From Azolla caroliniana (taxonomy: Eukaryota > Plantae > Polypodiophyta), in the NCBI GenBank assembly GCA_043228905.1, contig JBHGNT010000015.1, forward strand, positions 2,604,001-2,668,000: 64,000 nucleotides of DNA, written 5' to 3'. Shown here one piece after another: positions 18,326 through 58,297 of this stretch. Both the position numbers and the translations under genes were made by a program. The stretch's first letter is position 1, and each line of letters opens with the position of its first letter. The notes beneath the pieces are model-generated. The model worked only from the letters and a program-made list of their open reading frames with translations, searched no databases and was not told where the DNA came from.

Positions 18326-21300
18326 GCGTGCGTGTGCTACTCGAGCGACCACCGGGGTCTTGGACTGGGGAGGATGTTTGCAGAATTATCGAAGAGATGA
18401 CGATCAATGTAAGATTAGATGAAATAGGTTTACTCGAGAAGAAGAAAAATTGTACACTTGAGAAGTAGAAAAATATGAAGAAGATAAAGACAAATATAAT
18501 TATATTGATGATAATGGTGTTGGTGATATCACATATTGAGCCCCCCTTACACAAGCCCAAGTAGAGGCTTTTATAGGTCTTTCCATGCTTGTGACATGCA
18601 CAAAACCATGGGCTAAAACCATGGTTTTGTGCACACGGTTTTGCTTATGTCATGCAAAAACCATGGGTTTAGAACCATGGTTTTGTGCACATGGTTTTCT
18701 ATGATTGTTTCATCTAAAATTCGTATATAAAAAGGAAATATATAGAATCTACACTATATGATAGTTGTCCTAATGGTAAGGCAATTATCTTGTATCTTAG
18801 AGGTGTAAGGTTCAAACCTTGCTTGCACCCCTCTGTATGAACTCAAGTGCCACTAGGCCTTAGGTTTATTTGGTAAGTGCATGTGCAATGTTGCACATCC
18901 TTGGTTTATTCGTCTCACTCGGTTTCACACCATAGCCGAAAATCGTCATGACATCCACCCCCACCAAACCCGCACATCCTCCGGTATGTGCCGAGAAAGG
19001 TGAAGAGGTGAGATCTTTGGCAACGGTGATCAACCGAGTTCCTCTGCACGCTCGTCAACCTCGTCTGACTTCGTCTTCCACTTCGAGTATGCGCAATCTT
19101 TCCAACCGAATCACCGTAGCCACCCGATCCACCATATCTGGCGCTCACACCTTCTTCCCCGATTGGTTGTAGTAGATCTACCGAATGATGTCGTTGATCC
19201 GACTGCTCTTCCTTCGTCCACCGCACGTGTCCTTCGATTGGACTCCTGGCCACTCCTCGTGCTCACCGTCTTCAATTGGGTGTTGTGGATCGTTCGTGTC
19301 GATCTTTGATTATGCCACGTTTGCCCTTGTCCGGATCGGTCTTTGCCGATCGCTTTTTGGCTCGGTTGGCCTTCGTCTGCATTCGCATTTCGCCGAGTTC
19401 GGCTCGACTGATTGATTCTAGCTGGGTCGGCCCCCTTTTGGATCGGAATCGTCCGATCGATTTTCGCCGAATCTGGTTTCGGCCGGGTCGGCCCCGGCCG
19501 ATCGGCTCCCATGTGCATCTTCCTTCGTTCGGGCCGGAATCCCGGCCGGATCGTCTTCCAGTTCGACTGGTTCTCGACTCTTCCCTCCTTCCCGCATGCA
19601 GCCTCTCCATCGAACTCAACTGCGGCTTCATCCTTGGCCTCCTTGTTGGCCATATCCTTCCCTCCGTGTATGCTCGCCTCGAGCCATATTATCTCCTCTT
19701 CGCTACCTCCTTTATCTTTGGTCTTATGTCGACACACGGTCTCGACTACCGAAGTCTCCAGAACCGGTGTGAAGGAATCCCTTCGTTCATTTACCTTGTC
19801 TTCCTCATCACCCTTCCGGTCGTCCGCTTTTCCATCGACACATTCCGTCTCTCCGGCCTCACGTTGGCGCACGTGCACAACCGCCGAAGTCTCTAGAATA
19901 GGTGTGGGGATATCCTTTCTTCCTCGATGTTCTTCCTCTTTGTGTTGGGCTTTCGGATTCCCGTCACCACCTTCCGTCTCTCCGGTCTTACGTTGGCACA
20001 CGGGCACAACCGCCGAAGTCTCTGGAACAAGCGTGGAGAAAGTGTCGACATGGCTATCCGTCATTGATTCGTCCATAGCCACCTCCGACTTGATGTCATT
20101 TGTCATGGCTACCTCCTCAATCTCTTCAGACTCAAACACTTTATCTCCCTCGATCATGCAAGATTTTCTCATGCTTGCACCTTCATCACCCGATGTTTCA
20201 TACACAATGCATGTTCCAAAACATTTATCCTCCCTCGAAGTGGCTTTCCCCAGCCTCGAGTCATCGGCCTCCTCCTTGGCCGTCGTTTCTTCGTAAGACA
20301 AGAAGGTGACTTGTTTCGCACCTTCTCTCTCGGTACCGTCATACCGAACCTTAGCCTTTGTATTGGCCACTTCATTAACCCGCATTTGTTGGGAGGTCTC
20401 TTCTTCCTCGATCACCATTCGCCTCGGTTTTGTCTCCCTTTTAAGCTTCATTTCTTTTGGTGGTGGTGTGTTGTTGCATCTCGTCCCTCTTCGATCGTCC
20501 CTCATGGGCCGTCTTGTTGTCGTCGATATTCTCGCTCGCCCCTTATCGTGTAGTCGGCATACACTTTCCACTTTGCTCCAATCCTCGATGAGGCCATTTG
20601 CACCATCATCTTCTTCGAGTTTGAGGCCGATGGACATCCTTTCCATTCGATCGATTGACTTCACGAACAAAAGGACCTTATCGACCCCCACTAATCTTTG
20701 TTCCTGCTCTGAGAGTTGAGAAAAACGATGCTCGAGGTCTACGAATGCTTGTGTCGCGCCTTGGTGGGTCTTTGTCGATGTCACCCATTGGTCGAAGTTG
20801 CGTCGATCTCGTCCCTTTAGTCTCTCATAGCCATATTCCTCCAATAGAGCCTTCTCGAAAGTCTCCCACGAATCATGAGCATAGAAGCTCTTTTACGTCT
20901 TTGAAGATCAGTTGAGACACCACCCGACAAAAGTAATCCAGCCTCATAGCTTCGTCCACACCTCTTGAATCCATCTCCGCATTGTAGACTTTTAGAAAAC
21001 TTTGGACTTCAGCGCTGTTGAAATAGCTCACTTGCTCGACTACCCTATCGACGGCTTGTTGGGCTTCATTTCATCTTTTCCCTTCTCTCAGAAACTCCAT
21101 CATCCTTTTTGACATTGCCTCCATGAGATATTCGCCATCCATCTTCGTCCTCCCCTACTGCTCTTCACGTCGGGTTCACCAAATGATGTCGCGAAGATTC
21201 GCGCGTGCGCGTGCTACTCGAGCGACCACTGGGGTCTTGGACTGGGGAGGATGTTTGCAGAATTATCGAAGAGATGACGATCAATGTAAGATTAGATGAA

Positions 21301-21826
21301 ATTGGTTTACTTGAGAAGAAGAAAAATTGTACACTTGAGAAGTAGAAAAATATGAAGAAGATAAAGACAAATATAATTATATTGATGATAATGGTGTTGG
21401 TGATATCACATATTGAGCCCCCCTTACACAAGCCCAAGTAGAGGCTTTTATAGGTCTTTCCATGCTTGTGACATGCACAAAACCATGGGCTAAAACCATG
21501 GTTTTGTGCACACGGTTTTGCTTATGTCATGCAAAAACCATGGGTTTAGAACCATGGTTTTGTGCACATGGTTTTCTATGGTTGCTTCATCTAAAATTCG
21601 TATATAAAAAGTACATAGAATCTACACTATATGATAGTTGTCCTAATGGAAAGACAATCATCTTGTATCTTAGAGGTGCAAGGTTCAAACCTTGCTTGCA
21701 CCTCTCTGTATGAACTCAAGTGCCACTAGGCCTTATGTTTATTTGCTAAGTGCATGTGCAATGTTGCACATCCTTGGTTGATTCGTCTCACTCGGTTTCA
21801 CACTGTAGCCGAAAATCGTCACGACA
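18326..21826 (-). mobile_element. Non-autonomous gag-only LTR element (TR-GAG-like, TRG1)
   Basis: LTRs 21187-21826 and 18326-18953 (the latter clipped by E). Trp PBS 21164-21181 and PPT GGTGGGGGTGGA. The 2.2-kb interior has one gag-like frame and no pol. Confidence 0.88.
19111..21142 (-). pseudogene. Divergent Gag capsid fused to a long acidic, repeat-containing tail (one stop and one frameshift near the 5' end)
   Basis: MDGEYLMEAMS..WETFEKALLEEYG..VLLFVKSID..DWSKVESVC aligns with the gypsy A gag N-terminus. The tail has 3x (P)xLETSxVVxVxQR(K/E)xGETE. Confidence 0.75.
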
Positions 21827-21832
21827 ACGACA

Positions 21833-22624
21833 ACGCTTCTTTAGGTGACTTGGCATCTCGAATGTGGCCGCTAATCATGTGGTTGTGGACACATATTGCC
21901 AAGCAATACATGACTTGATTTGTCGCTTGCTCCCATGTTGCGTAGTCGGCGTTCTTTGAGTCGGGTCGATTTTCTTGTGCGCTGTTGATGTAGCTCCAAT
22001 ACCCTTGGCCGACAGGGTATTGGGTCATCTTGTACTCCCAAGATGAATAATTGTTGCGGTCTAGCTTTTCATTAGGGAGCGAACTACCCATTTGTGTGTT
22101 CATTTTGATGTAGTGCCTTCCTTTTTCGATTTCCTTCGCTCGATCACTTACTCGTACTACGTAGCGGATAGCCGGAATTTGTCATTGTCGTTTCGAACAT
22201 ACAATTATGAAGAGGTGGATAGGCTTAGTGGATGTGCTAAACCACACACTTTGATACCATGTTAAGAATTAGGTGATTAACTACGGGTTCATAAGTACCT
22301 AATTATGTGATTAGTTGATAAGCGGAAGATTAAGTGATATGTGTGTGAGAGCAAGAGAGAGAGGAAGTTACATTTAAATACCTAGAATGAGGTATATATA
22401 CATCTCATGTGCAAAGGTGCACATGTGTGAGTAGAATATAGGTACTAAGGTGTAAGTCCTATATTAAATGTACTTAGGAGTGGAGGATCTAGAATATCCC
22501 ACTTAAGTACAAGGTCCTATTTAAGGTGTTATAGTCAACACTCCTAACTAGATTCTATCTAGGTAACTACGAAGTTACATGGTTGACTAAATAACTAAAC
22601 TAAGTTGAGCTTGATCTCTCAACA
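21833..22624 (-). mobile_element. 5' half of copia2 (LTR 22260-22624, Met PBS, gag start), inverted relative to its 3' half
   Basis: LTR matches 44598-45653 in the opposite orientation. Outer flank ACAAA (minus) equals the TSD at 45654-45658. Gag breaks at KEA|W. Confidence 0.9.
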
Positions 22625-23965: not shown

Positions 23966-24517
23966 TTGTCAAGGCATGGCTCACCTAGAAGTGTAGCGTT
24001 TCTCGAACAGAAGATAACGTGAAAGTGAGGAAGGAATCGCTGGGATTTTGGACGGAAGAGACGAAAAGAGTAGAGATGTAATGTAGTAAAGAGAGATCAA
24101 TGAGATATGACAAAATAAGATGTAAAATGAGATTTGAGGAAATGTAAGAAATTTATAATTATTTCATGAAAGAGTTACAAAATGGTTGCGAGTGTCGTTG
24201 AACCTTTGCACTTTTTATGACAAGGTAACCACTCTTCTTTCTTGAAAGTAAACCACAATGTTCCTTTCTATCTTTTGATGAGGATATGTCTTGAAACTCC
24301 ATCACTTTTGTTGCGAGTTGAGAACCACAACCGCTAAGTTAGTTCTTCTCTTGTATTCTCAAAATTCTTTATAATCTTCACTTTTGCTCCTCTCTCTTAT
24401 GTTATATCTTCTAGTATATTTATTTTTGATATCCCTTATGTCTCCTTTTTGTGTAAAGGGATGCTCTTGCATGTGTGCAATATGGTGCACATGTAGTAGA
24501 TTGCATGTTTAGACTAT

Positions 24518-24523
<6 letters not shown>

Positions 24524-24549
<26 letters not shown>
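24524..24549. repeat. (TA)n microsatellite
   Basis: Direct observation. Confidence 0.95.
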
Positions 24550-25405: not shown

Positions 25406-25459
<54 letters not shown>

Positions 25460-27329
25460 CACACACATAACTCACATCTCTTCCGCTTCACAAGAATCCA
25501 TCTCTTGATTCTTTACATGGTATCAGAGCGATTTGGTAGCTCGATCTAGCCCATTCACCTCATTGTGATCGTGTGTTGTGCTCCACGCCGACGACCAAGA
25601 ACCGGCTCATCGCTATCATAGCTTCGCTACATAGCACACATTCGAAGAGAGAAGAAGAAGAAGAATCGACACAGTGAATACTCAACTGGGGAGTGCTCTC
25701 CCTACTGAGAAGTTGGATTGAAACAACTTCACATCTTGGGAGTACAAGATGCACCAATACCTTGTTGGACAAGGCTATTGGAGCTACATAAAAGGAGCGC
25801 ATGAAGATCGACCCGCCGAACCAGCTCCCGGATACGCGACATGGGAGCAAGCCACAAGCCGCGTGATGTATTGTTTGGCGACATGTGTTCACGACCACAT
25901 GCTCGGTTACATTCGAGAAGCCAAGACGTCGAAGGAAGCGTGGGAAAATCTACGAAAGATTTTCGCCGCCAACATGACCGCGAGGAAGCTTCAACTCCGC
26001 CAAGAGTTGAACAACATTCAACAAAGGGACATGTCCATCACGACATACACCTTGAAGATCAAGGAGCTTTGCGACTCGCTCGGCTCAATAAGCGTAAGTA
26101 TAGATGATGATGAGATGGCGCAAATATGCCTTGGCGGCCTCGCACCACGGTTCGGTGCGATGCGATTTGCCGTTCTAGCACGAGAGAAATCTCCCTCCTT
26201 CGAGCTCCAATCAATGCTATTGGTCGAAGAAAACCACGTGCGTACAAGGCCACATGCTCTACACGCACTCTAACGGAGGAAGAGGACGCGGACGAGCGAG
26301 AGGCTGATTCGGCCAAGGACAAGGCGGACGAGGTCTGACCTACGACAACAACTCCCAATTTCGGCCGCAAAACGGAGGCCAACGAGGAACCTTCGCAAGA
26401 AGGGGGAGCTTCCACTCCGGCCCGAGCCGTCAAAACGCAACCGAATGCGGATATTGTGGAAAGCTCGGCCACCACGAAGAAGAGTGCCGAAAGAAGATGC
26501 GTGAATCGGCTTCCACAAGCTGACAACTCACAAATTACGCGCACAATTCCGACTACGAAGAGTATAGCGGAATGTACGGGCACAACTCCGACTACGAAGA
26601 TCGTGGCGGAATGTATGCACACAACTTCGACCGTGGCGGAATGTTCATGATGAAACATAGAGCAAACTCTATGTCGGCCACTACCTCAACTAGTGCCTCC
26701 GGTCCGAAAGACGTATGGTTCGTCGATTCCGGTGCCTCGAACCATATGACATCGCATCAAGAATGGTTCCGAGAACTTCGAGAGCCGGAGCGACCCGGTT
26801 ATGTCGAAACCGGAGATGACACTACGCACCCAATTCGGCACATCGACAATGTTCCCTTCGGAAAAGAAGGTAAGCAAAATTACATTAAAAATGTCTTGCA
26901 TGTACCAACCATTACGAAGAATTTGGTCTCCGTCTGCCAAATTGTAGAGCAAGGGATGCAAGTTCGATTTAATCAAGGCGGTTGCTTCATCCAAAAAGAG
27001 GGCCGACTCATCGCACGCGGACAAAGAGAGGGCCGAATGTTCGCAAAGGGCATGAAAGCTGACTCCGACATAGAGTTGTGCCACAAGCGAATCGGCCACA
27101 TCAACCTCAACAAACTCAAAGCAATGAAATCGAAAGGAGTCGTCATCGGACTCCCGACATTCAAAGAAAAGGAGATTGAAGGTGTGTGCGAAGCATGCCA
27201 ATTCGGCAAGCAACACCGACAGCCATTCCCGAAAGAGTGAAACGTGAGCAAAGGTCTACTCAACGTAGTCCATTCCGACGTATGGGGACCGGCGCAGACA
27301 GCTACATTCAGCGGATGCCGATATTACGT
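25111..27329 (+). mobile_element. Ty1/copia element copia3, 5' part (LTR 25111-25517, Met PBS 25518-25529, decayed gag-PR-IN start)
   Basis: TGGTATCAGAGC, MHQYLVGQGYW, WFVDSGASNHM, CEACQFGK and HSDVWGP. Cut at YY|V by gypsy B. Its 3' part is absent from the window. Confidence 0.9.
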
Positions 27330-30300
27330 TGTCGTGAAGAAAACCGTCCACAAGCGGAATCGGTGCACCGGAGCGTAGGAACCGGCTCTTCATACACGTG
27401 CGCCTTATGTTGTGCATAGAAGATCCTCGGTAGGTAGGAAGTTAATAGGAAACGGCTCCTTCCTTGCCTATAAAAGGAGGAAGACAAGGAGGGGAGGGGG
27501 AATCACGGAGAGTCGAGGACGAAGTGCTGTCGGTTTGTGTGCGAAGGCTTCTCTCTCTCTCTGGTTCGTAAACTCCATAGCTTCCTTCTGTGCAGGTTTC
27601 GGGAGGCTCGCGCTGCTCTGAGGAATGCCCGAGTGCTTCCGGCAGCACCTCCAACCTCCTCCTTCCTTTCTGTGCGTTTACGAACAGGTATCGGCATCTG
27701 TTCGCCGGCCTGTTCGGTTGTAACCGACTTCGTGTTTTGGTTGTCTGTCTTTGTTAATACATACATACATTCGTGTCTCTCTGTGTCGCTGTCCCACTCG
27801 CGTCTTTGTGTCGAAGGGCCGTGTCCCTGTGAATCTACTCTCGCACGTAGTGGGTCTCTTCTCCTTTCTCTCTTGCTCTTCGGTACAGGACCCCCGAGGT
27901 CCCGCCTCATTCCACGCATCCGCGAGGAATACCTCAACATCTTTGGTGAACCCAACGTGAAGGAGGCGGCAAAAGAGCAAAAGATGAAAGGGTCGGATCT
28001 TGCAGAGGCCATGGCTTCGGCCGTGGATCGGATATTGAGCGCATGCGAGGGCTCCGGTGCCCTCAACAGAGCCATTGAGGCGGTTGTCGGTACGATTGGC
28101 TGGTTCAGCGGAAAGGATGCCACGAAGTATTTGGCGTCCTACGGGGCAAAAATGCTGATGCGGGACATTCCGAAAGAGAGGCATCTTGCCGGGTTTCCTC
28201 GAGTGGCTATGCCAAGCATCCATGCGGAGGTGCTCGAGGTGCGGGCGGAGAGCCGTACCTGGGAGGAGTTCGAAGGCCGACTCCTAGAAAAATACGGGCT
28301 GGAAGACACGCTCCGGCTTTCGAAACGAGACTTCATGGAATGGGTGGAGTCCCCCGGCAAGGGAAGAAACGCGTCGGCACTCCTCCGGGAGTTCGAAGAA
28401 CGCTTTGCGCGCCTTTCGGCGGCGCTTGACCGAACCGTTCTGGATACGAGTCGGGTCCTACTGTTCGTCAAGTCGGTGGACGAGCGGGACCGGGATCAAG
28501 TCGGCTCCTTGCTAGAAACCGAAGACGAGCTGACGACCGACTGGGCTGCGGTTAAGAGGGTCTGTGGCCGTTTCGACAAACGGCGGGAATGGGCTGATAA
28601 CGGGGCGGCCGGTGCGGGGTCTATCACAGCAAGGAGGCTTGAACCGGCACCGCAAGGGCGAAGGGAAGAAACCCGGGAATGGCTCAAAATCGGTCCGGCT
28701 GCGACCGACATGGTCAGTGGCTCGTCCGGAGGAGCAGCGCTGGAAGAGTTGACGCGGGCGATAAAGGATCTCCAGATCGCCCAGACTCGAAGGGAAGGCG
28801 GCGAACCGGCTCGTGACCGACGGCCGGCAGCAGAGAACAGGTGCATGTGGTGCGACGAGGTCAGCCACGTCCGGAAGGACTGCGGCGATTTCGCAGAAGC
28901 GTTGAGGAACCGGGTGGTGTACCTGTGGGAAGGCCGGGTGAACGCCGGCGACACCAGAAGGGCCCTAAACCGAAACGACGGACGAGGAGGTATGAAGACA
29001 CTGATGGAAGAAGCAGCGGCCCGACACGTGGAGGCCATCCACTACTCGGCGTCGGCCGGCATTCGGGTCGGGGGCAACGAGGCCCGAAAGGAGGGCAAAG
29101 ATGGATTCTGGTCGGCAATGCTGGAAGTTCTTGCCGGCGCATGGCTAAGGAAAGACGAAACGGACCGCGCTGAGAGACGGGTCCGGGAAATAACCGGGTG
29201 GAGCTATCCGGTCGAGGAGAAGACGGGCTTCGTAGAAGCCGCCTGCCGGAACTACAAGGCTCTGGTAGAAGACAAGCGAGTGGGGAAAGCCGGAGCGGTC
29301 AGGCCCTCACAACGGTACGAGACCCGATTCGGGCAACGACGGAACGATGCCGGTGGGTCCGGCTCGCAAGATAATCCCAGGAAGGGCGGATACCAACTGG
29401 GGACGGAAATAGAAAGGACTACGGACCTACGAAAGGTCCTAGAAGAACGGATCCTCGACAGCAAAGTGGAGCTGTCATTGCGGGAGGTGCTAGGGATCGC
29501 CAAGAAGGAGTTCCACGACTCATTGTGGACCTGGTGAAACGGAAGAGGCTGTCGACGGAGACGGAACCGGAACAACCGGTGGAGGTGCCGACAACGCACA
29601 TCGACGACATGGCGATGGAAGACGAGTGGGCGGAGAGCCACTATTCGATGCAACACTGGGCCCGAGCGACCACGGAGACCCCGGTAAAGATCGGAGATGT
29701 TCAGGAACCGGTGGTGGCGTTGGTGGACCACGGTTCGGAAATAAACCTAATGTCCATGGACTTCTATAAGAAGGGAAAGTGGCCGATCAACACCAGGCAC
29801 AGGTGGAAGATACGGGCGGCGACACGCGCCACCGAAGAACTGCACGGGGCCTGCCCGAATGTGCGAGTAAAGATCGGCGACGTCGAGATTGACCAACACT
29901 TCTTCGTACAGGAGACGTCCTCGCACCCGGTCATATTAGGGGAACCATACATCACGGCGGCGAGAATGGAGACCAAGTTGCTAGACAACGGTTCGGCCTA
30001 CGCGAGGGTCAAAAGCCAGGATGGGCGCCATTCGGTCCAATTTCTGACGGTGCGATCGAACCACGAGCGAAACCGCGAATCCCTCGGTGGCGAGAACCGG
30101 GAGGATTTTTAGAGAGGCGTGAGGCCGAGACAGTCCGGACACTCGGGAAAGAACCCACGACTGTACGATAAAACCGAAACCGAAGGAACCCTGTACGAAA
30201 GGTAGGAAATTTTGCTTCTCCAACAACGGAGGGTGTATGATAGTCGGCATCGTCGGCCGAGAAAAGACAAGGGCGGAAGTGCGACTTCGAGCGTGCGGAG

Positions 30301-33300: not shown

Positions 33301-33721
33301 ACGAAGTGCTGTCGGTTTGTGTGCGAAGGCTTCTCTCTCTCTCTGGTTCGCAAACTCCATAGCTTCCTTCTGTGCAGGTTTCGGGAGGCTCGCGCTGCTC
33401 TGAGGAATGCCCGAGTGCTTCCGGCAGCACCTCCAATCTCCTCCTTCCTTTCTGTGCGTTTACGAACAGGTATCGGCATCTGTTCGCCGGCCTGTTCGGT
33501 TGTAACCGACTTCGTGTTTTGGTTGTCTGTCTTTGTTAATACATACATACATTCGTGTCTCTCTGTGTCGTTGTCCCACTCGCGTCTTTGTGTCGAAGGG
33601 CCGTGTCCCTGTGAATCTACTCTCGCACGTAGTGGGTCTCTTCTCCTTTCTCTCTTGCTCTTCGGTACAGGACCCCCGAGGTCCCGCCTCATTCCACGCA
33701 TCCGCAAGGAATACCTCGACA
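27330..33721 (+). mobile_element. Gypsy copy B, defective, with non-matching flanks
   Basis: LTRs 27330-27939 and 33112-33721 (~6 differences in 610 bp) and a Trp PBS. Carries frameshifts and a ~557-bp RT deletion at ~31190. Flanks are ACGT (copia3) versus ACGG (TR-GAG LTR). Confidence 0.93.
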
Positions 33722-34012
33722 ACGGTTTTGCTTATGTCATGCACAAACCATGGGTTTAGAACCATAGTTTTGTGCAGATGGTTTTCTATGGTTGTTTCGT
33801 CTATAATTTGTATATGAAAAGGAAATACATAAAATTTATACTATATGATTGTTGTCCTAGTGGTAAGGCAAATATCTTGTATCTTAGAGGTGTAATGTTC
33901 AAACCTTGCTTGCACCCCTCTGTATGGACTCAAGTGCCACTAGGCCTTGGGAGGCTTATTTGGTTTATTCGTCTCACTCGGTTTCACACCGTAGCCGAAA
34001 ATCGTCACGACA
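33722..34012 (-). mobile_element. U3 half of a TR-GAG-family LTR (TRG2) inserted in the LTR of gypsy C
   Basis: Matches 21512-21826, ends CACGACA, flank GCGT. Confidence 0.88.
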
Positions 34013-38633: not shown

Positions 38634-39271
38634 TGTCGTGAATATGCGCGTGCGAGCGTGCTTCGCTTGAGCGGGACCACCGGGGTCTTGGACCAAGGAG
38701 GATGTCCGTCAAGGTATTGAGAAGAGGACGATGTGAATGTAAGATTGGAGGAAGACCTATTACACTTGAGAAGATTGAAGATTGTACACTTGAGAAGTAG
38801 ATAAATAATTACAAGATAGATGTGAAGAAGAAGAAATAGAAGCTTATATTATTGATGGTGATGATGATCATGATATCATATTGAGCCCCCCTTACACAAG
38901 TGTCCATGCACAAAACCATGGGCTTGGAGCCATGGTTTCTGTGCACACAGTTTTGCTTTGTGACATGCAGGAAACCATGGGCTTAAAACCGTGGTTTTGT
39001 GTACACGGTTTTGTTTGTTTGTTTCCTACGGAATACTGAATATGAGAAAGAAATATAGAACATCTAAAGCACTTAGTAGTAGCTTTAGTGGTAAGGTAAT
39101 TGCCTCTTACCTTAGAGGTGCAAGGTTCAAATCCTACTTGCAACCCTCTACATGCACTCAATGCCATTGTGACCTAGGTTTATTTATTTTCATTTTTACA
39201 AGTATTCGTGAAATGTGTGTGGATCCTCAATTTTTGACTTTTTCTCACACTAGACATGCCACATCACGACA
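38634..39271 (-). mobile_element. Solo LTR of the TR-GAG family (TRG3)
   Basis: TGTCGTG..CACGACA, homologous to 21187-21826. TSD ATGT/ACGC (C>T decay) within the ARVK codons of C protease. Confidence 0.88.
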
Positions 39272-45653: not shown

Positions 45654-45768
45654 ACAAAGAATTGTTGGCAATTATTGATTCTTTTGAGCAATGGTGTCAC
45701 TTCTTGTAGGACTGTCCTCACCAAATTATTGTTTACAACGATCATAAGAACCTCACATGCTTTTAAAA

Positions 45769-47046
45769 TGTTATAAAAATATACCAAAACTCCAAACTCG
45801 TAATCGAGATTTGAACCCATGACCTCTTCAAAGAAGATGTATAACCTCAACCACAAGAATAAACCATATTGTACATAATATTTTTTATAACTTTCATTAA
45901 ATATTTATGCATGTGTCCAAACCATGCTATATAAGCACGAATTCGAGTATTGATGAACCATTCCGGTTCAATGCCAATCTTTGGCATATTCTTGTAATCC
46001 TTGTTCTCCTTGTTAATACATTGTCAATTTCCTCGTATTTCTCTCTCGTTCCTCAAGTTCTCGTTCTTTTCTTCACTTCAAACTTGTCATTGGCTACAGC
46101 CCTAACAGTTTGAACTAGAATCCTACCCTTCTTCACTGCACTATCTTTTTTATCTCTTCTGTTTTCCGTTAAAGCTTTCATCCTATCTTCTCATAACCAT
46201 GGCGGTAGTAAGTGAACAAGATTATATGTGCCATCTAGGTGATCTTGAATGCTTAACTACTAAGATCACTCTTGGAATCTTATATTTCGAACTCTATTCC
46301 AGATTGTGTTGTTCCCCCTCCACCTTCTATTGAGCTTGATGAAAGTCCAAAATATGAGGTGAAAACCATTTTGGATTCCAAAGTTGTCACAAAAAATTGT
46401 ATTATTTTGTTAATTAGTTGGGTTATACACCTACAGATCGAACATGGGAGCCAACGGAAAATCTCAATAATGCCAAAAAAACTATACTTGAATTTCATCA
46501 TCGATATCTGAATAAGGCAAGTCCTAGTTCATGTATTGTGACTCGTGGAACGCATCGTCAAAGAAAGAGGATAATGTTATGAACATATACCAAAACTCCA
46601 AACTCGTAATAAAGATTTGAACCCATGACCATTTCAAAAAAAAGTGTAACCTCAACCACTAGGACAGATCATACTGCACTCTTATTTTTTATTAGATACT
46701 TAGGACACATATACAATATTATGAAATGTTGCCATTCGCGTGGGCTAACACATGATCACCAAGTGTCATGCTTGCATGAATGGCAAGTGGCAATGCTTAC
46801 ATAAATGACAAGTAGCGATCAGGTGTGCCTCAAGGTGGCGAGCATGCATGTGTCTAAACCTACTATATAAGCATGTATCCAAGTATTGATGAACCATTTT
46901 GATTCAATGCCAATCTTCCGCATATTATTATAACCCTTGAGTCTTCTCCTTGTTAATACATTATCAATTTCCTCGCATTTCTCTCTTATTTTCCTCTTCT
47001 CATTCTCGTCTTCACTTTAAACTTGTCCTTGGCTATGGCCCTAACA
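45769..47046 (+). mobile_element. 1.28-kb TRIM-like chromovirus derivative retaining a chromodomain-coding remnant
   Basis: LTRs 45769-46107 and 46575-47046, TSD TAAAA/CAAAA. The 467-bp interior has PPPPSIELDESPKYEVKTILDS and PPT AAGAAAGAGGATAA. Confidence 0.85.
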
Positions 47047-48160
47047 CAAAATGCTCAAGTCCTAAATCGACAACAAGTTTGATGGGAACCATTTTGACAC
47101 AGTTCAACTTTGTGATAACATATCGACCAGGAATACAATAAGTTAAAGTTGATGCCTTATTCAAATCTCTTATTTTGCACCAAAACCGGGGGACCCAACT
47201 TATGATCATGAAGAACAAGTCTTTTTTATCCCTAACCATTTGCGATTAATAGTAACAAATGTTTCTGAGACACCTTTATTTCTTGATTCTTTGCTCAAGC
47301 ATTGGTTCAGGTGATTTTGCACAATATATTTTAGACCACGTCGTTCCAAATCGTGGCTTCTTATTCACGCTCCAAGTTTTCCTGTATAGATTATGGGAAC
47401 TTTAGTTGGCATGATGGGTTGCTTTTGCGAAACATCCGTATTTATATTCCCAATGGACCTTCTCAACTTGAAGTCTTGCAACATTGTCATGATTCACCAT
47501 TGGCTAGACATTTCGAAGTTGTGAAAACATTGGAACTAGTTACTTGAAACTATTAGTTGTCACGAACACACCAACCATGGACTACGACGGAGCATGGATG
47601 ACGAGGGTACAACCAATAAGTGGAACCAGAAGTGAGGAGGCTCGGAACTCAAGAAGTTATGAGCGACAAGATTATGAACATAGGAAGCTAGGGTTAACTG
47701 GAGAGCATGAAGAAAAATATGAAGATCAAGGAGACAATATGGAATGAAACGAGAGTACTAGATTGATGTGTCAATGACTGGTGTTGAATCCCTTGAAAGG
47801 AACCAAGGAGGTTACAAGTATTTATACAAGTTCCGAGATTGAATGTCTCTAGAATATACTCGAGAAATATCTCTAGAATATGCCCATCTAGAATATATCG
47901 TACAATATTTCTAGAATATATTAACGAGTAGGATATTCCGATTCCGAAATGTACTATACTTTGGACTATAGAATACTAAACCATTATATACAAATGCATG
48001 ATACAAATGCATGCTCATATCAAAATGGTTGAGCATGAAATCTTGTTGATGTGAGGTTGTAGGTTCAATTATGTCACTGTATCATGACATTATCCTCCCC
48101 TTTACGACACCTTTTCGAAAGTGTGATGTAGTAGTGAGCAGGGAGTGGAGCACAAAGAGA

Positions 48161-48610
48161 CGTGAGAAACCATGTGTTGGCCTCATTGGAGACACGAACA
48201 CCAACTGACGTGAGCAACCATGGGTGGTCCTCATCGGGAACACAAACGGGTGTGAGCGACCATGGGTGGTCCTCATCGGGAACACAAACGGGTGTGAGCG
48301 ACCATGTGTGGTCCTCATCGGGAACACAAACGGGCATGAGCGACCATTTGGTCTTCACCGAGAACTGCAACACGAACAGGTGTGAGCGATCATGTGTGGC
48401 CCTCACTGGGAATTGGAACATGAGGGACCATGTACGGTCCTCACCAGGAATTGGAACTAGAACACGAATGAGCGTGAGTGACCATGCGGTTCTCACTAGG
48501 AACTAGAACATGAACGGGAGTAAGCGACCATGCGGTCCTCACCGAGAACTGGAACAAGAACATGCGTTAGTGACCATGTACGGTCCTCACCGGGAACTAG
48601 AATAACAATG
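48161..48610. repeat. ~39-45-bp tandem array inside element G
   Basis: About ten units of GTGAGCGACCATG(G/T)GTGGTCCTCA(T/C)CGGGAAC. Confidence 0.9.
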
Positions 48611-49242
48611 GGTGAAGGAGTGCAGGTGAAGCAATCAACTCGACTTCTTCTATCATGAGAGGGTAAATAGTCGACGTCGACCCAAAACACTGCACAAACG
48701 ATAGCGCTAGCGAGAAACTGATGTGATCCCCACCAGGAAAGTGAGTGGTTATGACCCCCACCGGAACTAGAAGGTGAGCGATTGAAATCGATCCTCGTCA
48801 ATGGAAAGTGGAGTACAAGCAAGCAATGATTCGATCCCCACCAGGAAAGTGAGCGGTTGTGACCCCCACCGAAATTGTGAAGGTGAACGATCAAAATCAA
48901 TCCTTGCTAAAATCGTGATGCAAAATGATACCTATAGATGATGACAATGACAATGAAGAGGGCGGAACAACGATGATAATGAAAGAACATGCAAAGTAGT
49001 GTTGATGATGATGAAGGTTGGGCGAAGTAGCTCGTTGATGAAGGCAACAAGAGGTGCTGAAAAATGATGATATTGAAGACGAGGGAGTGAAGACGATGAT
49101 GATGAGGAAGCTTCTCAACAAGGAATGACTGGGACTATGGTGACGATAGCGACTCTAAAACCAAGGATGTTGATGACTGTAACTCTAGAAGCAAGGACGG
49201 TGACGATGGTAACTCTAGAATGAAGGGCGATGACGAAGACGG

Positions 49243-52200
49243 TGTCGTGAAGAAAACCGTCCACAAGCGGAATCGGTGCACCGGAGCGTAGGAACCGGCT
49301 CTTCATGCACGTGCGCCTTATGTTGTACATAGGAGATCCTATGCAGGCAGATTCGGTAGGTGGGAAGTAAAGGGGAAACGGCTCCTTCCTTGCCTATAAA
49401 AGGAGGGAGACGAGGAGGAGGAAGGGATCGCGGAGAGTCGAGGACGAAGTGCTGTCGGTTTGTGTGCGAAGGCTTCTCTCTCTCTCTAGTTCGCAGACTC
49501 CATAGCTTCCTTCTGTGCAGGTTTCGGGAGACTCGCGCTGCTCTGAGGAATGCCCGAGTGCTTCCGGTAGCACCTCCAACCTACTCCTTCCTTTCTGTGC
49601 GTTTACGAACAAGTATCGGCATCTGTTCGCCGGCCTGCTCGGTTGTAACCGACTTCGTGTTTTGTTGTCTGTCTTGTTAATACATACATACATTCGTATC
49701 TCTCTTTGTCGCTGTCCAACTCGCGTCTTTGAGTCGAAGGGCTGTGTCCCTGTGAATCTACTCTCGCACGTAGTGGGTCTCTTCTATTTTCTCTCTTGCT
49801 CTTCGGTACAGGACCCCCGAGGTCCCGCCTCATTCCACGCATCCGCAAGGAATACCTCGACATCTTTGGTGAACCCGACGTGAAGGAGGCGGCAGAAGAG
49901 CAGAAGATGAAAGGGTCGGATCTTGCAGAGGCCATGGCTTCGTCCGTGGATCGGATATTGAGTGCAGGCGAGGGCACCGGCGCCCTCGACAGAGCCATTG
50001 AGGCGGTTGTCGATACGATTGGCCGGTTCAGCGGAAAGGATGCCACGAAGTATTTGGCGTCCTACGGGGCAGAAATGCTGATGCGGGACATTCCGGAAGA
50101 GAGGCGTCTTGCCGGGTTTCCTCGAGTGGCGATGCCGAGCATCCATGCGGAGGTGCTCGAGGTGCGGGCGGAGAGCCGTACCTGGGAGGAGTTCAAAGGC
50201 CGACTCCTAGAAAAATACGGGTTGGACGACACGCTCCGGCTTTCGAAACGGGACTTCATCGAATGGGTGGAGTTCCCCGGCAAGGGAAGAAACGCGACGG
50301 CACTCCTCCGGGAGTTCGAAGAACACTTTGCGTGCCTTTCGGCGCTTGATCGAACCTTTCTGGATACGAGTCGGGTCCTACTGTTCGTCAAGTCGGTGGA
50401 CGAGCGGGACCGGGATCAAGTCGGCTCCTTGCTGGAAACCGAAGACGGGCTGACGACCGACTGGGCTGCGGTTAAGAGAGTCTGTGGCCGTTTCGACAAA
50501 CGGCGAGAATGGGCTGACAACGGGGCGGCTGGTGCGGGCTCTATCACAGCAAGGAGGCTTGAACCGGCACCGCAAGGGCGAAGGGAAGAAACCCAGGAAT
50601 GGCTCGAAACCGGTCCGGCTTCAACCGGCCAGGTCAATGGCTCGTCCGGAGGAGCAGCGCTGGAGGAGTTGACGCGGGCAATAAAGGATCTCCAGATCGC
50701 CCAGACTCGAAGGGAAGGCGGCGAACCGGCTCGTGACCGTCGGCCGGCAGCAGAGAACAGGTGCATGTGGTGCGACGAGGTCGGCCACATCCGGAAGGAC
50801 TGCGGCGATTTCGCAGAAGCGTTGAGGAACCGGGTGGTGTACCTGTGGGAAGGCCGGGTGCACGCCGGCGACACCAGAAGGGCCCTGAACTGAAACGACG
50901 GGCGAGGAGGAATGAGAGACTGATGGAAGAGGCAACGGCCCGACACGTGGAGGCCATCCACTACTCGGCGTCGGCCGGCATTCGGGTTGGGGGCAGCGAG
51001 GCCCGAAAGGAGGGCAAAGACGGATTCTGGTCGGCAATGCTGGAAGGTCTTGTTGGTGCACGGCTAAGGGAAGACGAAACGGACCGCGCTGAGAGACGGG
51101 TCCGGGAAATAACCGAGTGGAGCGATCCGGTCGATGAGAAGACGGGCTTCGTAGAAGCCGCCTGCCGGAACTACGAGGCTCTGGTAGAAGACAAACGAGT
51201 GGGGAAAGCCGGAGCGGCCGGGCCCTCACAACGGTACGAGACCCGATTCGGGCAACGACGGAACGATGCCGGTGGGTCCGGCTCACAAGATAACCCCAGG
51301 AAGGGCGGATACCGACTGGGGACGGAAATAGAAAGGACTACGGACCTACGAAAGGTCCTAGAAGAACGGATCCTCGACAGCATAGTGGAGTTGTCATTGC
51401 GGGAGGTGCTAGGGATCGCCAAGAAGGAGTTCCACGACTCCATTGTGGACCTGGTGAAACGGAAGAGGCTGTCGACGGAGACGGAACCGGAAAGGCCGAT
51501 GGAGGTGCGGACGACGCACATTGACGACATGGCGATGGAAGACGAGTGGGCGGAGAGCCACTATTCGAGGCCGCACTGGGCCCGAGCGACCACGGAGACC
51601 CCGGTAAAGATCGGAGAGGTTCAGGAACCGGTGGTGGCACTGGTGGACCACGGTTCGGAAATAAACCTGATGTCCATGGACTTCTATAAGAAGGGGAAGT
51701 GGCCGATCAACACCAAGCACGGGTTGAAGATACGGGCGGCGACGCGCGCCACCGAGGAACTACACGGGGCCTGCCCGAACGTGCGAGTCAAGATCGGCGA
51801 CGTCAAGATTGACCAGCACTTCTTCGTACAGGAGACGTCCTCGCACCCGGTCATATTAGGGGAACCATACATCACGGCGGCGCGAATGGAGACCAAGGTG
51901 CTGGACAACGGTTCAGCCTACGCGAGGGTCAAAAGCCAGGACGGGCGCCATTTGGTCCAATTTCTGACGGTGCGGCCGAACCACGAGCGAAACCGCGAAT
52001 CCCTCGGTGGCGAGAATCGGGAGGATTTTTAGAAAGGGCTACCAAGGCGTGGGGCCGAGACAGCCCGGACACTCGGGAAAGAACCCACGACTGTACGATA
52101 GAACCGAAACCGAAGGAACCCTGTGCAATAGGTATGAAATTTTGCTTCTCCGACAACGGAGGGTGTATGATAGACGGCATCGTTGGCCGAGAAAAGACAA

Positions 52201-55200
52201 GGGTGGAAGTGCGACTTCGAGCGTGCGGAGTTCTCGGCCCGGACGAGGAAATCAGCGGAGCCGTGGAGGCGGTCTCCTTCGACGACACCTTGGGGATGCT
52301 GAGGAAGGTAGCCGGAGAAGACCTTAACGAAGACCAGATGATACCGGTATGTTCCGAAGAGATGTACGAAGTCATCGCGAACTTCAGTCGGGGGCTCGGG
52401 TCGGATCGGACGGCCCGAGTTAGCACGAAGTACAAGACTGTGGACCGGAAGGTAAGGCCAGTCGCGGCACCCTTACCGGAGGGCAGCGAGTCCCGAATCA
52501 GAGGGGTTGCGTCGGACCCCAGTTTACGAGATCCGGCCTACATAGGACACACCTTCACCGACGGGACGCTCCGGGAGCTCAAGATCGGTGGGGGCGGGTT
52601 CCTACTGCCGGCGGAGGAAGACCGGTTTCGGAGAATGCTCGGAAGGCACGGGAAAGCCTTCGCATTGTCGCCGGAAGAGATCGGGTGCGTAGACCCGACA
52701 ATCGTGGAGCCGATGGTGATATTCACGGTACCGCATGTGCCGTGGAATCTCAAGCCGATTCCGGTACCAAGAGCTCACATCCCGGAGTTGATGGAGGTAC
52801 TGAGGCAGAAAGTCGATATGGGCATTCTCGAACCGTCGAGTGCCCCATACTCGAACTGATGGTTTACCGTACCAAAGAAATACGGAACGTTGCGCTTCAT
52901 TCAAGACCTGCAGCCGGTCAACAGAGTGACCATTCAGAACGCAGGAATCGAACCGACCATAGACGAGTTCGCAGAGGCCTTCGCCGGAAGGTCGATTTAC
53001 TCAGTCGGTGATCTGTACTTGGGGTACGACCAGTTCCAGCTAGCCGTGGAGAGCAGAGACATTACGACGATGCGAACTCCCCTTGGCCTAGTACGAATGT
53101 GTACCCTGCCGCAAGGAGGGACCAACTCGGTGGCCCACATGGTGAATGCAATGAACAAGGTACTGAGGGATTGCATCCCGGACATCACCATGTCGTTTCT
53201 AAACGACATCCCTATCAAAGGGTGCCCGGTGGAAGAGAAGGACGAGACAGTCGGGCCGGACGGATGCCGGCGGTTCGTGGCAACACACATCGACGACTGC
53301 GAGAAGGTGCTACAAAGGCTAGAGGATGCGAGGCTCACCTTCTCCGGGGAGAAATCGGCCTTCAAGCAATCAGAAATCCTGGTGGTCGGACACCTGTGTG
53401 GACCATATGGCCGGAAGCCGTCGCCGGCAAAGGTAGAAGCCATCTCCGCGATGAAGACCGACTGTAGCTCGGTTACGGAAGTTCGGAGGTTCCTGGGGGC
53501 ATGCGCGTTCTACCACATATGGATCCCGCATTACGCCCACGTTGCGGAGCCGCTATACGGGTTGCTGAAGAAAGGGCGAAAATTCGAGTGGCGAGACGAC
53601 CACACGGAGTCGGTCCGGAAGCTGAAGGAAGCTCTTGCAGCAGCACCGGCGCTCCGGAAGGCTGTCTACGGGAAGGGTACCCCAGTATACATAACGGTGG
53701 ATACGAGTCTGACCGGGATCAGATGGGTCGTCAACCAAGAAGACGAGGGAGGCATTCGGTTCCCGATCCGATTCGGCGCAAAGGTCCTCAGTGAGCGACA
53801 TCGAGGGTACGCCCAGGTTAAACACGAACTCTGGGGTATCATTTCGGCAATAAAGGCCAACAAAGACTAATTGATCGGGACAGAAGTGATTATCGAGACG
53901 GATTGCCTGCCAATTCTCGGCATGGTTTCCGGATGCGCGACACCGGACCTTGTGATGCTCCGGTGGATAGCGTACATCAAGTCCCTGGGCCCGGAAATAC
54001 GGCACATTTCCGGAAAGGACAATGCCATGGCCGACATGCTTTCGAGGGCGAGGTTTGATGACGAGGGCGGCATGGTTTCGGAGGACGAAGAAGTCGGCGT
54101 GGACTTCTTCGAGGCGGCGTACGTGACGACCGATGGGACGAGTACTCCGGCACTTAACGACTTCGACGAGAGCAAGTACGACGGCGAGTGGCTCCGGATC
54201 GGTGGATTTTTGAGGACAATGACGCCGGATGCGTCATGGACAAAGGACGAGGCCAACCGGATCCGGAAGAAAGCTTACCGATTCTTTCTCCGGGACGGAT
54301 ACTTATGGAAGCACCCGAAGAAGAGGAACGGCGTCCCGCTCCGGGTGGTGGCGATGAAGGAAGAACAGGAGGAGCTGCTGACGGCCTACCACGACAGCCC
54401 TTGGGCTGGACACCGTGGAACGTGGGCCACGTTCGAGAAGATAAAGGGGAAGTACTGGTGGTCGGGACTGTACCGGGACGTGCATCGGTTCGTGACGACT
54501 TGCGAGAGTTGTCAGATGCACTCCATAGTCCGACATCGGGACGAGCTTCACCCTACGTACCCTGCGACCATCCACTTCAAATGGATGGTAGATCTGGTGA
54601 CGATGCCGATGGGAGTAGGACAGATGCGGTATCTGGTCCTGGCTCGGGAAGATCTGACGAACCAGGTGGAAGGCTGAGCCGTTCAGAACAAGGACGTGAT
54701 ATGCCGGTACGGGTGCGTCGGGAAGATCGTGGCTGATCGTGGCTGATCGCGGGGAGTTGGACGCCGAAGAGGCCGAGGAGTTGTTCGACCGGCTAGGAGT
54801 CAAGCTCTCGCTTACCACTGCGTACAATCCGGAGGCAAATGGAAAGGTGGAGCGCGGACACGGACCGATCGTCAAGGCGTTAGTTCGGGCATGCGGAGGT
54901 CAAGTCGAGAACTGGCCGTGGTTGCTGCCTTACGCGTTGTGGGCTGACCGAACTACGCACAGTTCGGTAACCGGATTCATGCCGGCAGAGCTCATGTTTG
55001 GGCAGAAGCCGATCATGTCGATGGAACGTACGATCTCCTCGTGGGCAACCGTGGACTGGAGAGACGAGATGAGCCGGGAGGAACTGTTGGCGGCGCGTAT
55101 ACGACAGCTCGAGCGAAGACCGGAGGACGTGGAGCAGGCTGCGGGAAAGCTTCGGGAAGCAAGGATGAGGAACAAAGCCCGGTTCGACCGAACGCACCGG

Positions 55201-56196
55201 CTCCGACCGAAGAAGATCGAGGAAGGTGGTTGGGTGCTAGTCTACGACAGCAGCCTCGACAATCAGCACCGATCGACACGAAAGTTCGCGAGAAGGTGGT
55301 TCGGACCTTACGTGGTACAAAGCGCCGACGACAACGGGATGTACCATCTGGCGGAACTCGACGGCACGAGAATGGCGATACCGGTAGCTGGGAAACGGAT
55401 CAAAGCGTTCAAGAAGCGTCACGACGACGAGCCAGATCCGGTTAACCTGGACCGGGACGACGAACGATCTGAAACCGAGGAAGAACCAACGGGCGGGGAA
55501 TGAAGGCTGGACCGGTTTTCTCCGTCCAAACACAATTTGGCGCATGCCGGTGGATGCGCGATTAGGTGGGGGCGGATGTCGTGAAGAAAACCGTCCACAA
55601 GCGGAATCGGTGCACTGGAGCGTAGGAACCGGCTCTTCATGCACGTGCGCCTTATGTTGTACATAGGAGATCCTAGGCAGGCAGATTCGGTAGGTGGGAA
55701 GTAAAGGGGAAACAGCTCCTTCCTTGCCTATAAAAGGAGGGAGACAAGGAGGAGGAAGGGATCGCGGAGAGTCGAGGACGAAGTGCTGTCGGTTTGTGTG
55801 CGAAGGTCTCTCTCTCTCTCTGGTTCGCAGACTCCATAGCTTCCTTCTGTGCAGGTTTCGGGAGACTCGCGCTGCTCTGAGGAATGCCCGAGTGCTTCCG
55901 GCAGCACCTCCAACCTACTCCTTCCTTTCTGTGCGTTTACGAATAGGTATCGGCATTTGTTCGCCGGCCTGCTCGGTTGTAACCGACTTCGTGTTTTGTT
56001 GTCTGTCTTGTTAATACATACATACATTCGTGTCTCTCTGTGTCGTTGTCCCACTCGCGTCTTTGAGTCGAAGGGCCGTGTCCCTGTGAATCTACTCTCG
56101 CACGTAGTGGGTCTCTTCTCTTTTCTCTCTTGCTCTTCGGTACAGGACCCCCGAGGTCCCGCCTCATTCCACGAATCCGCGAGGAATACCTCGACA
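49243..56196 (+). mobile_element. Gypsy copy D, full-length but disrupted
   Basis: LTRs 49243-49862 and 55577-56196 (~19 differences in 620 bp by eye), TSD ACGG, Trp PBS. Stops at 50891, 52857, 53868 and 54675. Confidence 0.95.
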
Positions 56197-57989
56197 ACGG
56201 GTAATGCTTCCTGTTGGAAGGGATTCAAACTGTCACGGACACACCAACCACGGATTACGATGGAGCATGGATGATGAGGCTACAACCGATAAGTGGCGCC
56301 GGAAGTGATGAGGCTAGGAACTCAAGAAGCTACAGTGAGCAACAAGATTATGAACATAGGAAGCTAGGGTTAATTGGAAAGCATGAAGACAAATATGAAG
56401 ATCAAGGCGACAATATGGAATGAAATGAGAGTACTAGACTGATGTGTCAATGACTAGTGTTGAATCCCTTGAAAGGGACCAAGGAGGTTACAAGTATTTA
56501 TACAAGTTCCGAGATTGAATGTCTCTAGAATATACTCAAGAAATATCTCTAGAATATACTCGTCTAGAATATATCGTACAATATTTCTAGAATATATTCA
56601 CGACTAGGATATTTTGATTTTGAAATATTCTATACAATAGACAATAGAATACTAAACCATTATATACAAATGCATGCTCATGTCAAAATGGTTGAGCATG
56701 AAATCTTATTGATGTGAGGTTCTAGGTTCAATCCTCACCGAATATGTATTTCATGTCACGGTATCATGACATTGGTGGCCTCAGTTTTGTCACTTTGCAA
56801 TGGACTATGTTTTCACTTGTGATGTATGTTTTCGATCAAAGTTTCCTCGACATCGACCATATGGTTTGTTGCAACCATTCCCGTTCTAAATGATCCATGG
56901 AAATCCATTTTTCTAGATTTCATCACAAATCTAAACCCATCTTCCAAAGGTTATGATGTTATTATTACAATGGTGGATCATTTTACGAAAATGGCACATT
57001 TTCTTCCATGTAGAAAGACTTTTACTAGTCATGAAAAGACAAATCTTGTTATGTAAAAAGTTTTCATGCATCATGGCCTTCTAGATGAAATCATTAATGA
57101 TCTCGGCCACAATTTATTGCGAAGTTTTGAACACACTTACTTAAGATCATTAGAATTTCTTGTAAACTATCATCAAGTTATCATCCTCAAACCAATAGTT
57201 AAATTGAACGCACATATCAAATATTAGAGTAGTATCACCATAGCTTTATCAAGTTTCAACTATCAACAAGATGATTGGATGGATTTCTTACAATATTTCA
57301 CTCCATTCTTTGCAAAAAACGGGATGTCATCCTCATTGGATGATGCTCGAATATCCAAAAGTCTCAAACAATCCTGTCTTCAAGGATCGTCTAGAATAAC
57401 TCAATGAAATTCAAGCCAAGCTTTATGATCGTTTGATTCATACTCAAGATTAGTACAAGAAGGTTGCAAATAGACATTGCTTAGATTATGCGCCTTAGAA
57501 ACCTAAGATTCAAGTTGGTGAACGTGTATGGTTATTACGTCATGATGTGAAAACTACTAGACCATGCAACAAATTGGATTTCAAACGTCTAGGTCCATTT
57601 GTAATCTTTGATCAAGTCAACGATGTTGCATTTCGTTTGGAGTTTTTGTCACATATATGTCTTCATCTAGTATTTCATTTTGATTGTTACAGCCATGGAC
57701 ATCAAGTTCCATCCCAAATTGGTTTGTTCCACCACCACCTCTGGTTCAACTTGCTGAAGGACCAGAATATGAGATAAAAGCTATTTTGGACTCCAAGGTC
57801 ATCCACAACAAGTTATATGACCTAATAGATTGGCTTGGATACACACCTAAAGATCGAACATGGGAACTTTCAAAGAACATTGCGAATGCCCCTAAATTTA
57901 AACATGAGTTTCATCTTTGCTACCCCAATAAACCAAATCCTACTTCATGTATTTTGACTCATGGAACTCGTCGTCAAACGAGGGAATGA

Positions 57990-58297
57990 TGTCAGAAAAT
58001 GTTAATATCTATATTTGAACCCATAACCTTTAAACAAGAGTCTTACACCCTAACAAATATGTTTTGATATTATTATTATTTAGAGTTATGTGGCATTGAA
58101 CACAATAGATGATTGCCAAATGGCATGCATGCATGTATGCCAAGTATTTGGTTCAACGCCAGTCTTCAACACCCTTGTCATATTGGTCTCCGGGTAATAT
58201 AAATTCTTGTCTTCTTGTTTTGTTATTGTCTTCTTTTCTTCAAAATCGGCATTGACTTCGAAGATTTGATTGTGAGAGTAGCATCCCTACATCTACA
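57990..58297 (+). repeat. Probable 3' LTR of chromovirus H (right end uncertain)
   Basis: TGTCA follows PPT GAGGGAATGA directly after the chromodomain. Resembles the TRIM LTRs. Confidence 0.55.

Follow-up and report, generated by a model that had tools for sequence, protein, structure and literature searches.

Promoters of small-RNA genes within the long terminal repeats (LTRs) of retrotransposons are, to our knowledge, known only as sense promoters of tiny non-autonomous elements, namely Cassandra and Helenus. Here we analyze a 64,000-nucleotide stretch of Azolla caroliniana DNA (assembly GCA_043228905.1, contig JBHGNT010000015.1, positions 2,604,001 to 2,668,000; hereafter the window), in which several LTRs carry in their U3 region an antisense pair of A-box-like and B-box-like motifs at tRNA-gene spacing (hereafter the module). 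Cassandra elements, which are TRIMs (terminal-repeat retrotransposons in miniature), bear in both LTRs a sense, type-1 promoter for RNA polymerase III (Pol III) that is derived from 5S rRNA and transcribes the element. Chromatin boundaries are formed by tRNA genes and by B boxes bound by TFIIIC, as well as by the B2 family of short interspersed elements (SINEs); these are host loci or free SINE copies, and we know of no case in which a boundary built into a retrotransposon's own LTR was shown. Helenus elements, also called 'TRIMp3', are TRIMs of 311-1263 bp with a tRNA-like sense promoter in the LTR (Kojima 2024, PMC10886601). Selaginella provides the only plant case of Helenus, and 'not a few' LTRs hold tRNA-like parts (PMC10886601).

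The modules described here resemble Cassandra in placing a cellular-type Pol III promoter in both LTRs of plant non-autonomous elements, but the promoter is of the tRNA-like type 2 and antisense rather than of type 1 and sense. With Helenus they share a tRNA-like stretch with box A and box B in LTRs of non-autonomous elements, no functional tRNA being encoded and insertion of a SINE or tRNA being the likely origin. Unlike in Helenus, where the sense stretch is the proposed element promoter, they are antisense, lie upstream of a normal TATA promoter and point out of the element; moreover, among their carriers are an element of 3.5 kb that codes for gag and an LTR belonging to a decayed autonomous chromovirus. 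As in tRNA-gene and SINE B2 boundaries, A and B boxes lie at the edge of a regulated domain. In a full-text literature search we came upon no antisense cassette described as lying upstream of the RNA polymerase II (Pol II) promoter of an LTR. Our tentative reading, to which we give somewhat less than an even chance, is that the modules are decayed tRNA-gene-like cassettes that became fixed in U3 of two independent Ty3/gypsy lineages and are kept for the recruitment of the Pol III machinery.

Results

Antisense A-box/B-box modules at the U3 edge

The window was scanned with relaxed patterns (up to two mismatches to TRGCNNAGTGG and up to one to GGTTCRANNCC, at a spacing of 38-50 nt), and the result was compared with 100 block-wise Markov shuffles of the window that preserve composition. 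The scan returned five matches, as against 0.63 +/- 0.72 in the shuffles (maximum 3), which places motif frequency above shuffle level. Four of the five are LTR modules, all of them antisense and within the first 200 nt of U3; the fifth, at 14285, falls within the interior of a Copia element and appears to be accidental. When the strict A-box consensus TRGYNNANNNGG was required together with a B box, the window had no match, and the motifs are thus only A-box-like. Carriers and modules of the first group, the TR-GAG family, are as follows.

18326-21826, minus strand: TRG1, a gag-only TR-GAG element with LTRs at 18326-18953 and 21187-21826
18759-18880, plus strand: module of the TRG1 3' LTR, comprising a tRNA-like head at 18759-18834 (A box 18766, B box 18809) and a conserved tail reaching to a T-rich run
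21632-21753, plus strand: module copy of the TRG1 5' LTR (A box 21639, B box 21682)
33722-34012, minus strand: TRG2, a shortened LTR of the TR-GAG family, with its module at 33846-33964 on the plus strand (A box 33853, B box decayed to TGTTCAAACC)
38634-39271, minus strand: LTR of a truncated TR-GAG-family copy, with its module at 39073-39197 on the plus strand (A box 39080, B box 39124)

The second group belongs to chromoviruses.

45769-47046, plus strand: chromovirus-derived TRIM with LTRs at 45769-46107 and 46575-47046 and a site resembling a primer binding site (PBS) at 46108-46123
45792-45867, minus strand: module of the TRIM 5' LTR (B box from 45817; A box at about 45860 decayed, three mismatches)
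46598-46673, minus strand: module of the TRIM 3' LTR (A box from 46666, B box from 46623)
47558-56771, minus strand: element G, non-coding and non-autonomous, with LTRs at 47558-48089 and 56231-56771 and a PBS at 56215-56230
48011-48086, plus strand: module of the G 3' LTR (A box 48018, B box 48062), 4-79 nt from the U3 edge
56674-56749, plus strand: module of the G 5' LTR (A box 56681, B box 56725)
57990-58400, plus strand: X, first part of the 3' LTR belonging to a decayed autonomous chromovirus, preceded by a chromodomain open reading frame (ORF) at 57684-57989 and by a polypurine tract (PPT) ending at 57989
57996-58071, minus strand: module remnant of X, a more decayed copy (B box from 58021, A box essentially gone)

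The A-box string TGTCCTAGTGGT occurs exactly at 33853 (plus strand, TRG2) and at 46655-46666 (minus strand, TRIM); at 18766 and 21639 it is found with one or two mismatches. When all GGTTCRA motifs of the window were listed, a B-box-like motif was found 43-44 nt 3' of each A-box string, and further B-box copies appeared at 39124, 48062 and 56725 on the plus strand and at 45817 and 58021 on the minus strand. With element orientation set by PPT, PBS and LTR ends, all LTR modules of the window are antisense to their element. They lie 4-195 nt from the U3 edge and upstream of a TATA box that each carrier LTR possesses of its own. A preliminary description of this locus had reported A-box-like and B-box-like motifs in these LTRs, at tRNA-like spacing, antisense to the elements and upstream of the Pol II TATA box; the motifs were located there and all of these features were recovered. 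It had also put the modules about 35-190 nt from the U3 edge, and here the edge position holds with the wider range measured.

Could the AT-rich U3 regions resemble such loose patterns by chance? The A boxes do need one or two mismatches to be found, and the match inside the Copia element looks like such an accident. Against this, only 0.63 matches are expected per window, antisense U3 edges make up less than 2% of the search space, and the motifs recur in relatives of the elements. Recurrence and conservation of the modules, described below, refute chance likeness, to which we leave next to no probability. The A-box/B-box motifs in these LTRs are real and above chance.

Two carrier lineages with different priming

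TRIM, G and X have in common the PPT (of the type GTCGT..AAAG..GAGGATAA), the LTR start TGTYATGA and the module. In pairwise comparisons of the modules, TRIM against X scored z = 5-6, and TRIM or X against G was mostly significant. On these grounds the three form one chromovirus clade. The nhmmer profile of the TR-GAG modules, by contrast, found no chromovirus module at E <= 10, and pairwise z between TR-GAG and chromovirus modules ranged from -0.7 to 3.3, without significant similarity beyond the boxes. The carriers are thus two Ty3/gypsy lineages, TR-GAG with a Trp-type PBS and an apparently self-priming chromovirus clade, rather than the three or more unrelated families first supposed. The 12-mer TGTCCTAGTGGT common to TRG2 and TRIM, although correctly noted as identical, is no sign of kinship: other TR-GAG sublineages have TAGCTTTAGTGG or TTGCCTTAGTGG in its place, and we therefore regard the identity as coincidence.

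TRG1 has LTRs that are 96.5% identical (self-BLAST), a PBS (TGGTGAACCCGACG) left of the 5' LTR and a PPT complement at 18954-18970 adjoining position 18953. Its single ORF (19111-20844, minus strand, 577 amino acids) resembles only the Gag of Gypsy A, with 38% identity to Gag residues 101-209; the ORF had no Pfam match, and no pol was found in TRG1. With LTRs, PBS, PPT, one gag-like ORF and no pol, TRG1 is a TR-GAG element by definition. The PBS has a Trp-type ending. Gypsy A, the autonomous partner, has LTR termini and a PBS in common with TR-GAG and a U3 of about 175-200 nt. No module was found in the window LTRs of autonomous Gypsy A, of a Gypsy A-related minus-strand copy or of Copia; the Gypsy A LTRs concerned are the following.

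4287-5001, plus strand: Gypsy A LTR without module, with TR-GAG-like LTR ends and PBS
10732-11446, 27330-27939, 33112-33721, 49240-49862 and 55577-56196: further Gypsy A LTRs without module

The chromovirus clade has no tRNA PBS. Chromodomain ORFs are present in the window, and relatives have Pfam Chromo matches. The PBS of G (56215-56230) pairs at 11 of 11 nt with a site 32 nt after the TATAAAT of the LTR, and that of TRIM (46108-46123) at 10 of 12 nt at the same offset (32 nt) after its TATA box. The two characters of the Tcn1/Tf1-type self-priming chromoviruses, a PBS complementary to the predicted transcript start and a chromodomain at the end of pol, are therefore both present in the TRIM/G/X clade, which appears to self-prime like Tcn1 and the Tf1-Sushi group. 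For Tcn1, a clade found in mosses and club mosses, self-priming has been predicted (Neumann et al. 2019, PMC6317226). The motif at the start of R in TRIM and G itself contains a B-box-like GGTTCAA or GGATTCAA.

The interior of TRIM consists of the chromodomain end of pol, with chromodomain-like ORFs, and the PPT. Spanning 1278 bp with two LTRs, a PPT and a PBS-like site, the element is a TRIM by definition, which TRG1 (3.5 kb, with a gag ORF) and X are not. Element G is bordered by a 5-bp target duplication, TTAGT/TTGGT, with one mismatch; it holds a nested Gypsy A copy (49240-56196) and itself sits within the old, AT-rich chromovirus that ends in X. Because X follows the chromodomain ORF of a decayed autonomous element, the earlier statement that all clear carriers are non-autonomous does not stand.

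The two modes of priming bear on a further explanation, in which the module would be part of a bipartite PBS of the Ty3 type: U3 of the genomic RNA would pair with the D and T arms of the primer tRNA and bridge the RNA ends at the start of reverse transcription. The U3 pairing site of Ty3 lies just after the PPT, a position resembling that of the module. Complements of D and T arms look exactly like antisense A and B boxes, and tRNAiMet, through its T and D arms, pairs with U3 in the 3' untranslated region (UTR) of Ty3 (PMC5371799); both systems have a U3 sequence complementary to tRNA D and T arms (Gabus et al. 1998, reviewed in PMC5371799). In Ty3, however, the partner is the primer tRNA, whereas the present module fails to match the primer to which the PBS points. 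In TR-GAG the Trp-type PBS and the acceptor and T arm of the module point to different tRNAs, Gypsy A has the same PBS without a module, and the chromovirus clade appears to self-prime. For these reasons a Ty3-type primer site was rejected as highly improbable. That the lineages replicate so differently, one by Trp-type tRNA priming and the other by self-priming, makes a common priming role unlikely, favors a role tied to the U3 edge and argues for convergence on position and orientation.

Conservation of the TR-GAG module

Homologues of the TRG1 Gag were found only in ENA metagenome assemblies, which evidently contain DNA of this plant or a close relative. In their contigs L001-L004 the module is antisense to gag with a spacing of 43 nt in each. 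When metagenome contigs were searched for the core pattern, 27 further copies of the TR-GAG module emerged, a sample drawn from the assemblies of one study. Of these, 25 are parts of LTRs whose edge follows 126-195 nt further downstream (23 by pattern match, L015 and L020 by eye), nine of these LTR copies show a PPT complement after the edge, and a T4 run stands directly behind the tail in 17 of the 27. One of the two others is cut by the contig end and the second, in L023, is different.

The spacing between the boxes is 43 nt in all TR-GAG sublineages, without any indel between them in 25 sequences. Conservation is not restricted to the boxes: the conserved unit is an island of about 110 nt that starts at the A box and extends to a T-rich run. 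In comparisons of sublineages with 29-31% Gag identity, the head of the island is 71-79% and the tail 64-77% identical (TRG1 against L002/L004: 71-76% and 75-77%), while the 100-nt flanks, at 46-52%, are at random level (46.5%). By segment, identity is 86% in the B box plus the next 13 nt, 75% in the A box, 76% between the boxes and 73% in the tail; it falls to 55% upstream, 51% beyond the T-run and 52% in the 5' acceptor-like 7 nt. Weak similarity in TR-GAG LTRs reaches about 40 nt upstream of tRNA position 1. Measured against flanking U3, the TR-GAG island is thus conserved, and the modules are heritable parts of U3 that appear to be kept by selection.

These data weigh on the view that the modules are passive relics of a tRNA-derived SINE or of a tRNA retro-copy in U3, their orientation and position reflecting no more than tolerated insertion sites. 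Sense copies would put poly(A) signals before R, so that antisense insertions would be the ones tolerated; SINE insertion into LTRs has been proposed as the origin of Helenus (Kojima 2024, PMC10886601); the modules are decayed and some have internal T-runs; and the antisense bias amounts to two independent lineages only. The LTRs of L002 and L004 also carry a tRNA-like stretch in sense orientation in R/U5. A relic would not be expected to leave an island of 71-79% identity between random-level flanks across sublineages with about 30% Gag identity, nor boxes free of indels. Similarity upstream of tRNA position 1 covers a region that a Pol III retro-copy would not carry, and none of the 27 sampled TR-GAG module copies is free-standing with its own ends and target duplications. 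We regard passive relics as rather unlikely. Capture of a tRNA or SINE head, as the preliminary description had it, is plausible as the source of the module, but the tRNA models recognized no copy and none of the 27 copies was a free SINE.

Several observations were made on the TR-GAG LTRs and their relatives. The sense stretch mentioned above lies downstream of the TATA box at L002:10050-10125 and L004:395-470 (both plus strand), has an A-box-like TAGTTACTTCATTGG and the B box GGGTTCAAATC, and is convergent with the antisense module in U3. At L023:1514-1649 (minus strand) the usual LTR sequence is missing behind the tail, where a T6 run and unrelated repeats are found; no other copy is a candidate for a different context. 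In L002 and L003, tandem elements have LTRs in common, in the order Gypsy A, LTR, TR-GAG, LTR and another PBS, and L003 has two gag ORFs, each followed by an LTR with a module. Between module and TATA box, U3 of the TRG1 type (18340-18700, 38640-39000) consists of repeat units around AAACCATGG and GTGCACA, in place of which the L002-type LTR has CATGCAT-rich repeats; these units may be enhancer repeats. The TRG1 3' LTR is short of its last ~16 nt (18310-18330); directly next to it, on the same strand, a Gypsy A-type LTR starts (TGTCGCGAAGAAAACC), an arrangement suggestive of a nested insertion or a recombination junction. Among the sequencing runs considered, which were DNA or unstranded contigs, no RNA run contained the TRG1 module stretch. 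A contig of 314 nt spans 18718-19010; its source run is only guessed to be RNA, and it carries no strand or end information.

Conservation in chromovirus relatives

The chromodomain ORF preceding X was searched against protein representatives, which led to short relatives on contigs L010, L011 and L012. Each contig has a complement of the B box and T arm 30-60 nt after the PPT and LTR start and, beyond it, a complement of a TGGTTGAGG-type D-arm sequence. An alignment of eight chromovirus sequences shows two conserved blocks, the B-box region and the D-arm region. L011 has a perfect T arm, CCTGG / GTTCGAAT / CCAGG, followed by a near-complementary acceptor strand. No module was found after the PPT in the distant chromoviruses L008 and L009, nor in L007.

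tRNA likeness and RNA folding

A typical cassette has an A/T-rich stretch with a TATA-like motif in front, then the A box, the B box 43-44 nt on and, in most copies, a T-run behind. It points outward and is placed between the LTR tip that integrase recognizes and the Pol II promoter of the element itself. We describe the module as a decayed tRNA-gene-like cassette, for which an origin from tRNA is plausible. The copy at 39073-39197 has the best cloverleaf-like fold among the copies. Isotype guesses (Gly, Lys, Gln) from low-threshold ARAGORN runs are not claimed.

A number of results weigh against a cassette kept for Pol III. ARAGORN at default settings called no tRNA gene in the window or in seven loci; at the 80% threshold it drew cloverleaves for 4 of 9 modules, yet did so at 43 sites in the window. 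The Rfam tRNA model gave no match at E <= 10, even in stretches of 251 nt or of 2.4-2.5 kb. The A boxes deviate from consensus by 1-3 mismatches, and in the chromovirus clade the A box decays faster than the B box. Runs of T4-T8 stand between the boxes in the TRIM 3' LTR, where the run is a T8, and in L002, L010 and L012, and could stop Pol III early. The 50-nt tail of the TR-GAG island is about as conserved as the boxes, so that box function alone is insufficient to explain conservation of the island. The sense stretch in R/U5 of L002 and L004 means that LTR modules of this genome are not exclusively antisense. Lastly, sequence by itself fits TFIIIC binding and other functions at the DNA or RNA level alike.

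Part of this evidence points to a conserved cis-element unrelated to Pol III, either an upstream enhancer for Pol II or an RNA or DNA hairpin acting in the 3' UTR of the genomic RNA, its likeness to the boxes being due to ancestry or coincidence. Both strands of the TR-GAG island have a consensus fold better than column shuffles. The element-sense strand forms a conserved 10-bp hairpin around the B box and does slightly better than the module strand (z = -4.5 and -7.2). Conservation that stays even all the way from A box to tail end, the missing match to the tRNA model and the unconserved 5' acceptor-like 7 nt likewise agree with such an element. However, hairpin conservation in the 25-sequence set is inflated, because the search pattern fixed that region. 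The module strand also has a 10-bp helix of its own between the A-box region and the tail, 95% paired and with 21% G-U pairs; it shows no double compensatory change, and its shuffle control was not significant. The LTRs of the two lineages are unalignable, yet both have A-like and B-like boxes at tRNA spacing in the same orientation and position. A cis-element of this kind is in our view unlikely.

Further features of the window

The window is a nest of plant LTR retrotransposons, with GC-rich Gypsy and Copia copies within AT-rich DNA. The Gag of Gypsy A, the main Gypsy family, contains DUF4100, and its closest protein clusters are from Streptophyta. The interior of element G has a tandem repeat at 48159-48365 that gives rise to repetitive ORFs on both strands. 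Beside TRG1, an inverted repeat pair of about 270 nt (21833-22102 and 25675-25941, 76% identical) surrounds about 3.5 kb of AT-rich DNA and may represent the ends of a DNA transposon. A full-length U6 snRNA gene (59183-59285, minus strand; Rfam, 76.2 bits) is separated by about 1.2 kb from the point at which the X LTR begins.

Discussion

On the tentative reading put forward here, the best-fitting of those considered, the cassette would be retained for recruitment of the Pol III machinery, TFIIIC being drawn to the B box and Pol III perhaps as well. Recruitment would turn the upstream edge of every LTR into a nucleosome-free, TFIIIC-bound boundary. Copies without an internal T-run might in addition yield a short outward antisense transcript of about 100-130 nt. 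Boundary or transcript would then serve to protect the LTR promoter, or to adjust it, where the elements land in chromatin rich in repeats. For such a boundary TFIIIC binding alone would suffice, which fits the B box as the best-kept block.

A wider claim is that LTR retrotransposons of non-seed plants domesticated a tRNA-gene promoter at least twice independently, to serve at the U3 edge as a TFIIIC/Pol III cassette that faces outward and is selected for the benefit of the element and not of the host. Every LTR would thereby possess a chromatin boundary of its own or a small gene for an antisense Pol III RNA. We hold this broader statement to be doubtful, if conceivable.

In a conserved antisense cassette of Pol III type that lies upstream of a normal Pol II promoter in the LTR, the raw material of Cassandra and Helenus would be put to another use. 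In loose, low-threshold screens the modules could pass for SINEs or tRNA pseudogenes; they go uncalled by tRNA finders at default settings. If TFIIIC does bind them, they would represent the first case of a retrotransposon equipped with a boundary element that serves the retrotransposon itself, and they would add many extra TFIIIC/Pol III sites across the genome.

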